Positions 57,081 through 62,203 are shown, numbered from the whole stretch's first letter. The stretch is DNA of 63,810 nt, filler included, from Perkinsus chesapeaki ATCC PRA-425 (GCA_013115145.1; 10 parts of 10 records of this genome joined end to end with filler, not necessarily neighbours in it), one strand, 5' to 3'. A program made the numbers and translations. The notes: generated by a model not told the origin, from the letters alone.

Positions 57081-57224
57081 TTGTGGTGGTGGTCGTTGTA
57101 GTTGTTGTAGTTGTGGTGGTTGTTGTAGTTGTTGTAGTGGTAGTTGTGGTGGTCGTAGTTGTTGTAGTGGTGGTCGTAGTTGTTGTAGTGGTGGTCGTAG
57201 TTGTTGTAGTTGTGGTGGTCGTGG

Positions 57225-57225
<1 letters not shown>
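57081..57225 (-). repeat. (ACN)n tract, poly-Thr-coding on the - strand; 3' flank of the LINE
   Basis: Every triplet is ACA, ACC, ACG or ACT in one frame. Confidence 0.9.
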
Positions 57226-57273
<48 letters not shown>

Positions 57274-57354
57274 GTAGTTTAGAGTCCGACGCCAATATGG
57301 CTTAGTCAGACTGTCTTACACGTTGTTGCACTCGTATGTTCCCACTTAATAGTT

Positions 57355-60300
57355 CTAGTCGGTCAAGGCCCGGCCGGTCCCTAGGGACTCGACTGAGCGG
57401 CAGACCAGGTTTAATGACTTTAGCCGTTCCAAAGAGATAGAGTACTGGCCCACGGTACCAATTGTATTGTGCCAAGCTGGTCGATTGCGTATAATGGGAC
57501 AGACCATTATCTTGTGCTGACCGTCGTCTGTTACATCACAGTAGGGGCATAGAGGTGAGTCCTGCATTCCCAGGCGGTGCCGATAGGAGCCTAGGGATTT
57601 AGAGCGGTTCAGAAGGACCCTAATGACTGGAGGTAGGATGTCAGCATTAGACCAGACGAGTCTTCTTTGATGGTGCGAGCCAAGTAGCGATCGGACTGGC
57701 ATTTTACAGCTTAACAGATCTCTTTCCAAGTTACCGTTCATCTTTACCAGTAGCAGTCTCTTAGCGTTGGCCTTGGACCTGGCCACCGGTGTGAAGGTAG
57801 GTAGGCTGCGAGCCACATTAGCCGCCTTATCAGCGAGGTCGTTGCCCAGTATTTCGTCACTGTGGGATGGTATCCAGCAGAGCATAGATTTGGTCTCCTT
57901 AATCAGGTCCCTAATGAGGTTAAGAGGGTCCTTAGCGACGGTCGAGCAGATCGAGAGTAGTGCAGAGGAGGAGTCTGTGAAGATGTTGGCCTCTCCTGGC
58001 CGAAGAAAACGTCGGCAGTACTTGAGGGCTTCAAGTAGGGCTGCTATCTCGCATTGGGCTATGGTAGAGTGATCAGGTAGCCTCCAGTACTTTTGAGTCA
58101 CCACTAAGTCCGACGAGTCCATAACCACAAAAGCTGCTCCAGCAGTATTACTCTTGCAACATAGGGACCCGTCAGTATAGATCCTGTACTTAGATAGGTC
58201 TCTGGCATTGGCTAGTTCAATAGCTGAGCTTCTGTTCACCGATAACCGGACATGTCTTGTGCAGTCTTCATCCTTCCCGTCCATTCGGCCGTAAACCTCA
58301 AACTCTCGTGTTAGTGCTTCTGGGACAGCCTCACAGAGGTAGGCGGTGAACTTCTTCTTAACCGGCGTTTTAACGCCCAGAAGGAGACACTCCCTAAAGT
58401 CCTTGTTGTGTAGGTACTCGATACATGCCCGGTCCCGAAGGGTAACTGAGAGCGGGTGGCGGCCTGATAGTGCCAAAACCTCTCTTGTGGCCGAAAAGTG
58501 GGAGATCCTGTACGCAGACTTAAGGTACTTTGCCTGGAACTGGTCGAGAAGCTTCTGTGACCTCTTTTCAAAGAGGGTGCTACCATAGCAGCTCAGAGCA
58601 TAGGTTAGAGTCGGTACGATGACGACATCGAAGATCCTCAGCATAGCCGAGACCGAGAGACCGTAGTTCTTGCGGACATAACGGAGGACAGAGCCCAGCG
58701 TGCGTTGGCATTTCAAGATACCCTCTCTAAGGTGTAGGAAGCCGGATAAGGACTTGGGTAAAGTTACCCCTAGGATCCTGATCGATTGGCTCTGAAAACA
58801 CCGAGAGTTGTAGCTCGTTAAGACTTCCGTCTTCTCCATCGAGAGGGCGAGTCCTATCCTGTCCAAGTAGGTGCCCGCACAGAGTATACAAGCCCGGATT
58901 GTCTCGTCCATCTCATTGATAGGGAGGCCTTTCCGGAAGTTAAAGACCAGAAAGGAGTCGTCGGCATAGGAGAGGACGTTAACATTGTAGCCAGCGCCGT
59001 CATAGATGGGGTCCCTCTGCAGCTCGGATAAGGTGTCGAAGCAGACGATGTTGAAAAGTAGTGGACTGAGTATCGCCCCTTGAGGAGTGCCGCGGTCTCC
59101 GGGAGAGTAACGGTAGGTAGATACACCTAGGTAGTGGGCATGATTGACGCGTCCAGATAACCAGTTCATGATCCAGTTACATAAGGCCGGGTGGACATCG
59201 TGCTTGACCAAAGAATTAAGGATGGACTCGTGCTTGATGTTACCGAACGCGTTGGAGCAGTCCAAGGCCGCTATCGACCATACCTTTTTACCAGATACAT
59301 CCTTCCTTATCCTATTTACCAACCTGCTAGTGCTCCTGTTCGGTAGATAGCCAAACATCATGTCTGAGTTTAACATCATATCAACCATGCTTTGCAGTTT
59401 AGAGCCCACCACGGCCTCACATAGTTTACCGATCACTGAGAGAAGGGAGATAGGTCGGACACTGTTTATTTTGCCTTCGTTCTTTCCTTTCGGCAGGAAA
59501 CAAACCAGGGCAGATTTAAACGAGTTAGGCACGAAACCGAAGTTGATACAGGCTGTATATATACCAGCGAGCTCAGTGATGACCCAGTGGGGAGTTTCAG
59601 CTAGGTGCCGGAGCCGTAGGCCATCTTCACCACTGGCTTTATTCCAGTTCTTTCTTCTCGATCGGAGGATACTCTCCACTTCTTCAGCAGTAATGTGCGC
59701 CTCGGATGCAGAGCTCGTACTTAATATCGGCCAAGGCATAGCTTGGGGAGGTTCCTTAGAGCCTAGGTAAGTGTCAGATAGCCGTTCAACCGTTTCGTAG
59801 GGGGAGGAGTCGCCGATCAGTAAAGACGGACCAAGCCTAGCTGGTGACTTAACCTTCTTGAGGAAGTTCATATCCATTTCAATCCTGTTCGCAAAGGTCT
59901 CAAAACCTTTGCTTTTCTTGAGATCAATCAGCTCGCGGTAAGTGGTTCTCGACGCCTTATACTCCTCACTGCCTTTGCCATACAGTCGTTCTTGCCTCTT
60001 GAGGTTGGCACGGGCTTGTCGGCAATCATCATCCCACCACTGCTTATCCTTTCTTTGTCGAGGGGGCTTCTTCTTCGGCGTGGCTGCTCTGGCAGCTTCT
60101 TGTAGTCGTGCACGAAGGCTCTCTAACCTGAGTGATATAGTCTCTTCGTTCCGGATAGGAGTAGAAGTATCTAGTGGGTTCTTGGCCAAGAAGTCGTGGT
60201 ACATTTCCCAGTTTGTACGGGAAAAGCACAAATCGCTTAGAGCATTTTGCCCTGTCACCGAAGTATTATAGGGGTCCTCTTGGTTATTAGGGCCAGCCTT

Positions 60301-60942
60301 GAAGCTGATGATGAAGTGGTCACTCAGGGACTCTTCTTCGCTGACGTACCAGTCCCTAACTATTGTGTCAGAGCCATAGAGAGTTATGACCACTATGGAC
60401 TCCCTGGAGTCGTCGGTTGCAGAGGCGACATGTTTGTAGGTGGGCTTAAGGTTAATGGTGTCATTCGCACAGTTTAAGAGACAGGCATCCATGAACTCCG
60501 CTACTTGGTTGCCCGTACGGTTGGCGGCTCCATTTCTCCTCTCTGGATGAAGAACTCCCCATAGATCGTGATAGCCGTTGCAGTCGCCGGCCAAGATGAC
60601 GTCACCACGATGAAGGAGTGCATCACTTAGCTGCCAGAGAAAGAGGATGTCGTCAGAGCCAGGGGGAATATAAAAGGAGCAGACGCATAGGTTGCTGGAG
60701 GTGACCATTATAGACTCGTCAGAGGAGATGCTCGGGACCACAGCGAAAAGATGAGAGAGGTTGTGGTGGATATACACAGAGGCCTTCGAAGACTGGGAGT
60801 TCCTAAAACAGACATAACCCGACAAGTGGTATGCTCTTGGAGGTTCCTGAACAAGCAAAAAGTCGGGTTTAAAAATTTGAGAAATTGAGTTCATAGAGGC
60901 TTTTGATTTGTTACAATTTATCTGAATAAATTTATAAAACAT
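57355..60942 (-). CDS. LINE ORF2, 1195 aa: AP endonuclease, reverse transcriptase, RNase H, C-terminal Cys/His knuckle
   Basis: QINCN, VQEP, AGDCNG, SDH (EN); RPISLL, PQGAILSPLLF, YADD (RT); IYTDGS, CEIAA, FTDS, WIPSH, GNDLAD (RNase H); CPYC...H...C. Confidence 0.95.
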   Translation of the reverse strand: MFYKFIQINCNKSKASMNSISQIFKPDFLLVQEPPRAYHLSGYVCFRNSQSSKASVYIHHNLSHLFAVVPSISSDESIMVTSSNLCVCSFYIPPGSDDILFLWQLSDALLHRGDVILAGDCNGYHDLWGVLHPERRNGAANRTGNQVAEFMDACLLNCANDTINLKPTYKHVASATDDSRESIVVITLYGSDTIVRDWYVSEEESLSDHFIISFKAGPNNQEDPYNTSVTGQNALSDLCFSRTNWEMYHDFLAKNPLDTSTPIRNEETISLRLESLRARLQEAARAATPKKKPPRQRKDKQWWDDDCRQARANLKRQERLYGKGSEEYKASRTTYRELIDLKKSKGFETFANRIEMDMNFLKKVKSPARLGPSLLIGDSSPYETVERLSDTYLGSKEPPQAMPWPILSTSSASEAHITAEEVESILRSRRKNWNKASGEDGLRLRHLAETPHWVITELAGIYTACINFGFVPNSFKSALVCFLPKGKNEGKINSVRPISLLSVIGKLCEAVVGSKLQSMVDMMLNSDMMFGYLPNRSTSRLVNRIRKDVSGKKVWSIAALDCSNAFGNIKHESILNSLVKHDVHPALCNWIMNWLSGRVNHAHYLGVSTYRYSPGDRGTPQGAILSPLLFNIVCFDTLSELQRDPIYDGAGYNVNVLSYADDSFLVFNFRKGLPINEMDETIRACILCAGTYLDRIGLALSMEKTEVLTSYNSRCFQSQSIRILGVTLPKSLSGFLHLREGILKCQRTLGSVLRYVRKNYGLSVSAMLRIFDVVIVPTLTYALSCYGSTLFEKRSQKLLDQFQAKYLKSAYRISHFSATREVLALSGRHPLSVTLRDRACIEYLHNKDFRECLLLGVKTPVKKKFTAYLCEAVPEALTREFEVYGRMDGKDEDCTRHVRLSVNRSSAIELANARDLSKYRIYTDGSLCCKSNTAGAAFVVMDSSDLVVTQKYWRLPDHSTIAQCEIAALLEALKYCRRFLRPGEANIFTDSSSALLSICSTVAKDPLNLIRDLIKETKSMLCWIPSHSDEILGNDLADKAANVARSLPTFTPVARSKANAKRLLLVKMNGNLERDLLSCKMPVRSLLGSHHQRRLVWSNADILPPVIRVLLNRSKSLGSYRHRLGMQDSPLCPYCDVTDDGQHKIMVCPIIRNRPAWHNTIGTVGQYSISLERLKSLNLVCRSVESLGTGRALTD

Positions 60943-60980
60943 TGATAAAATAATAGGTGTTAGTTGCTGGTCATCCCCGT

Positions 60981-62036
60981 CTACTGACAGGGAAGAGGTC
61001 CGTCGCCATAGTCAGTCATGTTGACCTTCCTCTGCTTCAACTCATTGGTCTTATGACAACATGAGTTGTCTCCTCTGAAAGGCGTGTGGCCCTCTAGACC
61101 GCATAGGCAGCACTTCAATCTATCAGGGAAGCCCTCGATCGGGCATTCCCCCGGTTTAAGAGAGTGCTTACCACAGCACCTAACACAGATCCTGTCTTCA
61201 GGTTTGGTCTTACAGTTTGCGGGGTTGGCATGGGCTTTGCCACAGGTCAAACATACTCGGACGGTGACCACGTCCTTGCACTTCAGCTTCTGGCCTTTGA
61301 CGAAGCAACCGCCTCTGGATATAAGCTCCTTCCTCTGGTCTGCATTCATGCGGTAGATGGTGATCTTATCGTTGGACCTGACTGTATGCCAGGTGCTCGG
61401 ATCCAGCTTGGGATTGTGGGTCTTGATGTCGGCGGGCAGGTTTTGGATGTCTTCTTGATAGTCGCCGGTAAAAATTAATACTTCAGGCTGAAGCTTGGGG
61501 GCTACACCTGCAGTAAACGGAAGATGATTCTGTACCAGCTTACTTTGGATGTCCTCCACAGCCGTCGAAGGGGAGGTGATAACCTCAATACCCTGCTGGC
61601 GTGGTTTGATTCTAATGATCTCTAGTCCATCCAAAGCGTCTTTGATCTTCTTTAGGTTAGCATCTTGACTATCCACTGGCTGTGGGGTAGTCGGGTTGAG
61701 CAAGACAGACTTGTTCTTCACATTAGGAGTAAAAACGCGATTGGTACTTGGCGGCTGTACACCGCTCACTGCAGCGTCTCTATACGAGCGCTGCCAGGGG
61801 TTATCTACACTATCTTCTAAATCCTTCCTAAGGCTTCTATTCTCTTCTAATAATTCAAAAAGATACAGACGAACCTCACTTACTAGCTTCTCTCCTAGTT
61901 CTCCTCTTTCTTTGGAGATCCTCTTATTAGCCTCATACTTCACAAGGTCCTCAATCTGGTTAAGGACCTTCGAAATGGGGGCTCGTCCGTCACTGTCGCA
62001 GCTAGCTGCGTCGCTGTTGTCAGGGATGGAAGACAT
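60981..62036 (-). CDS. LINE ORF1, 351 aa, gag-like with three C-terminal Cys/His knuckles
   Basis: N-terminal coiled coil, then CLTCGKAHANPANC, CVRCCGKHSLKPGEC and CCLCGLEGH. Confidence 0.88.
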   Translation of the reverse strand: MSSIPDNSDAASCDSDGRAPISKVLNQIEDLVKYEANKRISKERGELGEKLVSEVRLYLFELLEENRSLRKDLEDSVDNPWQRSYRDAAVSGVQPPSTNRVFTPNVKNKSVLLNPTTPQPVDSQDANLKKIKDALDGLEIIRIKPRQQGIEVITSPSTAVEDIQSKLVQNHLPFTAGVAPKLQPEVLIFTGDYQEDIQNLPADIKTHNPKLDPSTWHTVRSNDKITIYRMNADQRKELISRGGCFVKGQKLKCKDVVTVRVCLTCGKAHANPANCKTKPEDRICVRCCGKHSLKPGECPIEGFPDRLKCCLCGLEGHTPFRGDNSCCHKTNELKQRKVNMTDYGDGPLPCQ

Positions 62037-62076
62037 ATGAGCTTGAGGGCTCTTATAGCGGGGAAGTCAACTAAGA

Positions 62077-62090
62077 CTTGAGCCAAGATG
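62077..62090 (-). other. Spliced-leader relic at the LINE 5' end
   Basis: CATCTTGGCTCAAG equals the last 14 nt of the Perkinsus SL ACCGTAGCCATCTTGGCTCAAG. It is not followed by GT, so it has the spliced (mRNA) form. Confidence 0.85.
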
Positions 62091-62091
62091 T

Positions 62092-62203
62092 GTGGTCGTG
62101 GTAGTTGTAGTGGTGGTGGTCGTAGTTGTTGTAGTTGTGGTCGTGGTAGTTGTGGTGGTTGTTGTAGTTGTGGTGGTGGTTGTAGTTGTAGTTGTGGTGG
62201 TCG
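62092..62203 (-). repeat. (ACN)n tract, poly-Thr-coding on the - strand; 5' flank of the LINE
   Basis: All triplets are ACN, in frame with the 3' flank once the element and one TSD are removed. Confidence 0.9.

Follow-up and report, generated by a model that had tools for sequence, protein, structure and literature searches.

When long interspersed elements (LINEs) are target-specific, their choice of multicopy non-coding or RNA-gene targets is usually seen as a way to avoid harm. R1 and R2 are site-specific LINEs of the ribosomal DNA (rDNA) that are co-transcribed with their target, and CRE, SLACS and CZAR of trypanosomatids, as well as NeSL of nematodes, insert in spliced-leader (SL) RNA genes, with SL exon letters on both sides. 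Other LINEs with an apurinic/apyrimidinic endonuclease-like (APE) domain are specific for microsatellites, including Waldo in (ACAY)n and Mino in (AC)n (R1 clade), Kibi in (TC)n, Koshi in (TTC)n and Dong in (TAA)n, according to Kojima & Fujiwara (2003, 2004) as summarised in PMC3812793. The element described here comes from Perkinsus chesapeaki, a clam parasite, and was found in a window of 63,810 nucleotides, the whole stretch of DNA that was analysed, in which positions 57081-62203 are one entire P. chesapeaki contig of 5,123 bp. This contig is made up of a LINE with tracts of ACN triplets, the codons of Thr, on both sides. A comparison with relatives in Perkinsus olseni indicates that a Perkinsus LINE clade probably integrates preferentially into such (ACN)n Thr-codon tracts, its sense strand always coinciding with the Thr-coding one, and the 5' terminus of the element is very probably derived from the Perkinsus spliced leader. 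Literature searches naming Perkinsus turned up no described Perkinsus LINE family.

By analogy, the element would work like the microsatellite-specific APE LINEs, since it lies inside one type of simple repeat, in a fixed orientation and with a repeat-like 3' tail, and a specific 3' RNA structure is plausible. What appears to be new is the host, the target and the 5' end. The host, Perkinsus, belongs to the alveolate protists (Perkinsozoa) and not to the animals; in place of a strict non-coding microsatellite, the target is a degenerate (ACN)n codon repeat that codes for protein at some loci at least; and, unlike its animal counterparts, the element seems to be incompletely specific and carries a relic of the SL at its 5' end.

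The contig was read on the minus strand throughout, and triplets were counted in that direction. On this strand it holds a full-length retrotransposon of the non-LTR type (lacking long terminal repeats, LTRs), apparently intact, as both of its open reading frames (ORFs) are open. The features, from 5' to 3' along that strand, are the following.

62091..62203, minus strand: 5' flanking (ACN)37 tract, 37/37 triplets ACN in one frame, ending at the contig edge
62092..62102, minus strand: copy 1 of a candidate target-site duplication (TSD), ACCACGACCAC, low-complexity and weakly significant
62077..62090, minus strand: SL relic CATCTTGGCTCAAG at the element 5' terminus, equal to nt 9-22 of PmaSL1 in 14/14 nt
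62037..62090, minus strand: 5' untranslated region (UTR), 54 nt, its first ~24 nt kept across families whose ORF2 proteins are 45-50% identical
60981..62036, minus strand: ORF1 of 351 aa; its three CCHC-like zinc knuckles lie within aa 262-327
57355..60942, minus strand: ORF2, 1,195 aa, with APE endonuclease, reverse transcriptase (RT) and RNase H, recognised by Pfam and by motifs
57283..57312, minus strand: stem-loop in the 3' UTR just before the tail, conserved in three families
57226..57273, minus strand: tail, exactly (ACA)16, in phase with the downstream ACN triplets
57215..57225, minus strand: copy 2 of the candidate TSD, ACCACGACCAC, directly after the tail
57081..57225, minus strand: 3' flanking (ACN)48 tract, 48/48 triplets ACN, ending at the contig edge

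The initial annotation of this DNA had proposed a LINE inserted in a Thr-coding tract, and the insertion is indeed a LINE according to its two ORFs and to the Pfam domains of ORF2, which are Exo_endo_phos_2 (E = 2.9e-11; the APE endonuclease, aa 7-212), RVT_1 (E = 2.2e-30; the RT, aa 487-728, with YADD at aa 659) and RNase_H (aa 919-1043), followed by a C-terminal CX2CX7HX4C motif at aa 1132. ORF1, which a spacer of 38 nt separates from ORF2, is 61-67% identical to the ORF1 of P. olseni elements, and neither Pfam nor the PDB gave a relative for it. The 3' UTR between ORF2 and the tail has 81 nt, and no LTRs or terminal inverted repeats were found in the element. The P. chesapeaki protein FOL47_000881 (P0001) maps onto the contig at 100% identity. 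Judged by its reading frames, this APE-type LINE is probably intact and still competent.

The flanking tracts are uniform in the first two positions of their triplets. All 85 flank triplets (85/85, both sides together) are ACN, which agrees with the earlier claim that the flanks vary solely at the third base, and all four third bases are used (ACA 29, ACC 29, ACT 19, ACG 8). On the 3' side, from 57273 to 57081, 64/64 triplets are ACN, namely the 16 ACA of the tail, whose predicted length was thus right, plus the 48 of the flank. Tandem Repeats Finder detects higher-order units of 18-24 bp in the flanks, with ~75-84% identity between units, and since every flank triplet is ACN the differences between units are confined to third positions. 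Removal of the element together with one ACCACGACCAC copy leaves ~81 in-frame ACN triplets, in line with the more than 80 Thr codons that had been announced. The 11-bp candidate TSD offers only three informative third positions and is therefore weakly significant (a chance match has a probability of roughly 0.02-0.1), so the caution already expressed about a duplication in low-complexity sequence is justified. The ATG of ORF1 shares its frame with the upstream ACN triplets, and an in-frame TGA lies nine codons past the junction (TAG in the P. olseni locus L005); a fusion protein of host and ORF1 is therefore not expected.

The closest relatives of ORF2 provide the main evidence for a target preference. 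Close matches were found in four Perkinsus proteins only, and the P. olseni clusters P0002, P0003 and P0004, with 45%, 47% and 33% identity to ORF2, are represented at seven loci from five assemblies, counted here as four (L002/L006, L005, L003/L007 and L001/L004). These four were picked by ORF2 protein similarity alone, blind to their flanks; a search with the C-terminal 399 aa of ORF2 found no additional Perkinsus 3' fragments, just distant RNase H matches. Three of the four protein-ascertained loci adjoin ACN or Thr/Ser-codon tracts. L002/L006 holds a 5'-truncated element in sense orientation, with Thr/Ser-codon tracts on both flanks, and the codons downstream continue the phase of its short (CAA)n tail. 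The full-length element in L005, which belongs to the same family, is immediately preceded by 34 ACN triplets, and its tail reaches the contig end. L003/L007 contains an element truncated in ORF1, with ~440 ACN triplets upstream and its 3' part deleted. The tract share in P. chesapeaki, measured as ACN tracts among unitig letters, is roughly 0.2-1%; with a share of at most 1%, the probability that three of four loci fall in tracts by chance would be around 10^-5 or lower.

Two further LINE insertions, both with (CAAAA)n tails and both in sense orientation, occur in the same tracts. The one at L007:6134-8215 is a distant LINE (23% identity across RT and RNase H) that ACN flanks on either side, and the one at L005:1-72 is the 3' end of a different element. 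Both are followed by an identical stretch of 16 nt, a word present at ~3% of the codon positions of the L007 tract, and this shared 3' flank may be taken as the only hint of sequence-specific cleavage. Altogether, the independent insertions with an ACN junction, that of the contig included, are Thr-sense in 6/6 cases. The tails of the relatives are (CAA)n with 5 to at least 23 units, and an (ACA)n/(CAA)n tail is, by this comparison, a trait of the family. Another LINE at L007:1-3995, 24% identical in ORF2, with APE, RT and RNase H and an A-rich tail, ends ~200 bp ahead of a (CA)n run and the Thr/Ser tract; this poly(A)-type LINE sits outside the tract, and therefore at least one Perkinsus LINE lineage is not within it.

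Short-read data of P. chesapeaki itself bear on the number of copies. The summed contig depth along the element in run X1, from 5' to 3', is 117 in the 5' third, then 178, 248 and 446, and ~1,640 in the last ~35 bp. The ~14-fold greater depth at these last ~35 bp indicates that the 3' terminus is shared with other elements, and the stepwise profile is compatible with a single full-length copy, a small number of 5'-truncated ones and other elements with the same 3' terminus. The mapping of unitigs covered the contig outside 57081-57281, a part that was set aside as repeat. In each run, >10^4 short contigs match the 5' flank, and their summed depth exceeds that of the element ~1,000-fold; ACN tracts are therefore abundant in this genome, as had been anticipated. 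The P. chesapeaki loci L009 and L043, of 11 and 14 kb respectively, have no ACN run of at least 6 codons.

Several observations weigh against a preference for Thr-coding tracts. In L001/L004, a full-length element, the 5' flank is not ACN and a divergent ORF lies ~500 bp away; near the junction there is only a short ACT-ACT patch, and the tail reaches the contig end in both assemblies. In P. chesapeaki, the truncation junctions at 60199 and 57607 run into non-ACN sequence. Only two 3' junctions of (CAA)n-tailed families are readable, and the insertions sampled are few. No N-terminal exon is evident for the long L007 tract, which may represent a decayed gene or a satellite. The contig at 57081-62203 stops within its own ACN tract, to which no gene is tied; an empty site or paralogue of its flanks was sought among the other tracts examined, and the identity was only ~80%, the level expected for any pair of ACN tracts. 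The element was present in no RNA run searched. The earlier proposal of a LINE specialised for Thr tracts would thus fit the six insertions in ACN or Thr/Ser tracts, all of them Thr-sense, but not one full-length copy (L001/L004) and two truncated copies with non-ACN 5' flanks, and this small sample speaks for a preference rather than a strict specialisation.

The third-base variation had been read as the signature of a Thr-coding region. The pattern itself is confirmed, but the opposite strand of the flanks is GTN (poly-Val) and shows the same third-base-only variation, and the pattern alone therefore leaves the coding strand unfixed. Evidence that tracts of this kind can be coding comes from other loci. 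Downstream of the element in L002, the tract comprises ~100 Thr/Ser/Ala codons and then continues in frame into two Cys-rich modules and a stop codon, the other frames being broken or Arg/Pro-rich. In P. chesapeaki, L008 carries an ACN-rich tract of ~1.1 kb that forms one ORF into a Cys module. An assembly gap and then the annotated start of P0173 follow downstream of the tract, so that the real ORF begins >1 kb before that start. No Pfam family was found for the Cys module, and an exhaustive protein search gave 44 homologous clusters, 10 of them below 1e-10; the named homologues are P. chesapeaki and P. olseni proteins with repeated modules and Thr-rich linkers between them, and one has a signal-peptide-like N-terminus. 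The two ORFs and this module family indicate that Perkinsus ACN tracts can be stalks of mucin-like secreted proteins. Moreover, non-ACN triplets in the P. olseni tracts are mostly Ser and Ala codons, which favours the Thr strand over the Val strand. The insertion in L002 splits the Thr/Ser stalk from the Cys-rich modules of such a mucin-like secreted-protein gene, and the suggestion of the initial annotation that the element can disrupt surface proteins is supported by this case.

Some further features of these genes were observed. The secreted family (L002:4179-4577; P0172, P0173, P0175 and P0177) is built from a ~35-aa module, C..YC...G.SYC.YW..P.VC.G, and Thr-rich linkers, and tandem duplicate genes of this family lie on one P. 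chesapeaki contig (L043). At L008:1-260, the first ~80 pure ACN triplets are off by a CA dinucleotide from the next ~400 Thr-rich codons, which is either a low-complexity assembly error or a real frameshift. Gene models have been placed opposite ACN tracts at L007:4183-9715, L008:119-989 and L003:11-384, all on the minus strand; they read poly-Val-like and cross LINE insertions, so that they look spurious.

It is conceivable that insertion takes place nearly anywhere and that copies survive mainly in long ACN tracts, which would be tolerant or little-recombining; a survival explanation of this kind was earlier proposed for Waldo-A/B near CA repeats in Drosophila, as cited in PMC3812793. The abundance of ACN tracts, the presence in them of a very distant LINE family (23% identity, other tail), the copies with non-ACN 5' flanks, the graveyard-like L007 tract with its two insertions and the Drosophila precedent itself all speak for such a passive accumulation. 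We nevertheless consider it unlikely, because survival alone would not be expected to yield 6/6 insertions in one orientation, tails that meet the tract in triplet phase, or two (CAAAA)n-tailed insertions with the same 16-nt 3' flank; furthermore, a poly(A)-type LINE at the same locus lies outside the tract, and insertion within a coding stalk, as in L002, is not obviously harmless. The (ACA)n-tailed RNA or cDNA might instead be captured by microhomology at frequent breaks in ACN tracts, with an unspecific endonuclease. The tail being a subset of the target repeat and always in phase with it, together with the weak TSD, would fit this annealing-driven capture, but the endonuclease domain is intact and conserved, the tails are complete, without 3' truncation, and (CAAAA)n tails, which pair poorly with NGT, are found in the same tracts and in the same orientation, so we regard this route as improbable. 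Preferential integration into (ACN)n tracts is the reading that we favour.

A separate question, whose answer is compatible with such targeting either way, is whether the tract of the contig itself codes for protein. That it is a non-coding ACN minisatellite, in which amplification of 18-24-bp units produced the third-base variation, is a serious possibility, to which we give somewhat less than an even chance. Higher-order units do exist, the contig ends in the tract and the element is in no RNA run, the GTN strand gives an equal pattern, and pure ACN is stop-free in all three sense frames, so an open frame proves nothing. On the other hand, the ~30 unit-to-unit differences are all at third positions, the non-ACN triplets of P. 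olseni are mostly Ser or Ala codons, and both L008 and L002 link such tracts to real ORFs. The idea that the ACN tract was born from the tail of the LINE has in its favour that LINE tails are known microsatellite seeds (PMC3812793) and that ACA, the unit of the tail, falls among the ACN triplets; it was rejected as contradicted by the 5' flanks, for ACN also lies 5' of the element, the tract combines four ACN codons in complex units, and in L002 it goes on into a Cys-rich ORF, all of which makes such an origin extremely improbable. Equally negligible in our estimate is an assembly artefact joining the element to unrelated low-complexity ends, as a short contig with repeats at both ends might suggest. 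Logan unitigs of two studies cross the 5' junction from the element into 30 bp of the 5' flank, and a 5.8-kb contig of the second study spans the whole element and ~970 nt past the tail, so that the contig is not chimeric; besides, P. olseni assemblies, which are independent, show the same architecture.

The element very probably bears a trace of the spliced leader where it begins. PmaSL1, the spliced leader of Perkinsus, has 22 nt (PMC3101222, PMC9399869), and its final 14 nt are identical to CATCTTGGCTCAAG. Full-length P. olseni elements (L001:419-432, L004:824-837, L005:174-187) start precisely with these 14 nt as well, and three diverged families, that of the contig included, thus share them although their ORF2 proteins are only 45-50% identical. 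Across ~80 kb, comprising nine of the Perkinsus loci examined and the contig, this 14-nt relic was seen nowhere else. It is followed by TC or AT, never by the GT of the SL intron, and then by ~10 more conserved nt, and the first 8 nt of the SL are missing from every relic. An insertion into an SL RNA gene was rejected in view of the absence of these 8 nt and of the ACN flank. We hold with high confidence that the 5' terminus derives from the SL. The relic suggests that the LINE RNA is SL-trans-spliced, and it would imply the copying of a trans-spliced LINE mRNA into DNA. That the relic is perfectly conserved suggests either a renewal in each cycle by trans-splicing at the terminal AG of the relic or a functional constraint. 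No Rfam family was found on the whole contig at E <= 1, and thus no ribozyme, HDV-like or other, at the element 5' end.

In Perkinsus marinus, >100 unexplained intron-less 'SL-like' genomic sequences were reported in 2011 (PMC3101222). The primer PmaSL-L1-like-F1, which represents one class of these sequences, shares the post-SL letters ATCTTAGT with the LINE 5' UTRs, and this 'SL-like' class, which its authors did not connect with retrotransposons (PMC3101222), may consist of LINE 5' ends. A metagenome scan with a 17-mer of the SL end and the 5' UTR gave 33 matches, one of them in a human-gut-labelled contig; none reaches into the SL, as would be expected of chance matches to a 17-mer, and these loci were set aside.

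Retroposed genes of dinoflagellates carry relic spliced leaders (Slamovits & Keeling 2008, via PMC7245778). These retrogenes, the P. marinus 'SL-like' sequences and the Perkinsus LINEs are alike in having the 3' part of the SL exon at their 5' border with no SL intron behind it, and one P. marinus class has the identical post-SL letters in addition. There are two differences: the carrier is here an autonomous LINE and not a cellular retrogene, and the relic has 14 nt (SL nt 9-22) and is not the 15-nt one found after the internal AG. Like CRE, SLACS, CZAR and NeSL, the element is a LINE associated with SL sequence in a trans-splicing organism; unlike them, it lacks the first 8 SL nt, its flank is ACN, and the SL letters are part of the element. 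The relic at the exact 5' end would give a concrete, testable account of LINE expression from a 5' UTR of 54 nt where the host trans-splices its mRNAs, and it may account for part of the 'SL-like' genomic sequences of 2011.

With R1 and R2 the Perkinsus element would share sense insertion in a highly transcribed multicopy target, and a very short 5' UTR, as would suit an element that relies on host transcription. In the PDB, the R1Bm endonuclease (2ei9) matches its endonuclease best, albeit weakly (E = 3e-4), and this match and the automatic 'R1DM' labels on distant matches are the only pointers to a possible R1 affinity. The differences are that the target is a protein-coding repeat and not rRNA, that R2 has a restriction-like endonuclease, and that the Perkinsus element has no Rfam family or ribozyme, its 5' end being formed, according to the present proposal, by SL trans-splicing.

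A cycle that would account for these features can be proposed. The element would be transcribed into an mRNA that carries, or once carried, the Perkinsus SL, given that the DNA copy starts with its last 14 nt; a read-through transcript would be trans-spliced at the AG that ends the observed relic. ORF1p, with its CCHC knuckles, and ORF2p would then bind the RNA through the 3' stem-loop. The endonuclease would nick the NGT strand of an ACN tract, followed by target-primed reverse transcription, for which the (ACA)n tail may pair with the nicked strand, perfectly on TGT and at two bases in three on any other NGT. Such pairing would make reverse transcription start within the tail, and priming there would explain the ACN-type tail unit, the constant triplet phase and the variable length (5, 16 and at least 23 units). 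A second nick ~11 bp away might finally leave the short duplication, for which the candidate TSD is a weak trace. The shared orientation, and the fact that the same tracts hold families with different tails, point to a specificity of the endonuclease, or at the level of chromatin, beyond annealing, and insertion in the sense direction of transcribed genes, taken with the SL relic, suggests an expression by read-through and trans-splicing.

More tentatively, and we think it possible rather than likely, the clade could live on mucin-like genes as R2 lives on rDNA, through a sense integration directed by tail and endonuclease, without a promoter of its own and with SL trans-splicing freeing the element from the host transcript. 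The target would then be the Thr-codon repeats of highly expressed secreted-protein genes, the SL would provide the cap, every new copy would re-import the SL letters, and surface-mucin genes would be truncated, split and reshuffled as a by-product. If a preference for a protein-coding codon repeat in mucin-like secreted genes of an animal parasite is true, it would be an unusual choice of target, and the LINE would be a built-in source of turnover for genes that are likely host-facing.

A 3' stem-loop is the customary recognition element of 'stringent' LINEs. That of the Perkinsus elements shows compensatory changes at two to three pairs (RNAalifold), and its fold has z-scores of -2.95, -3.49 and -5.73 in the three families; a metagenome scan with the stem-loop pattern gave 0 matches. 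No branch at the truncation points found in the other sample was seen in run X2, which belongs to the second study. In the same run the element differs by 14 bp inserted after 57303 and by T>A at 57312, both within the stem-loop region, and these differences between the runs may reflect variation between strains or alleles, or a simplification of the contigs.

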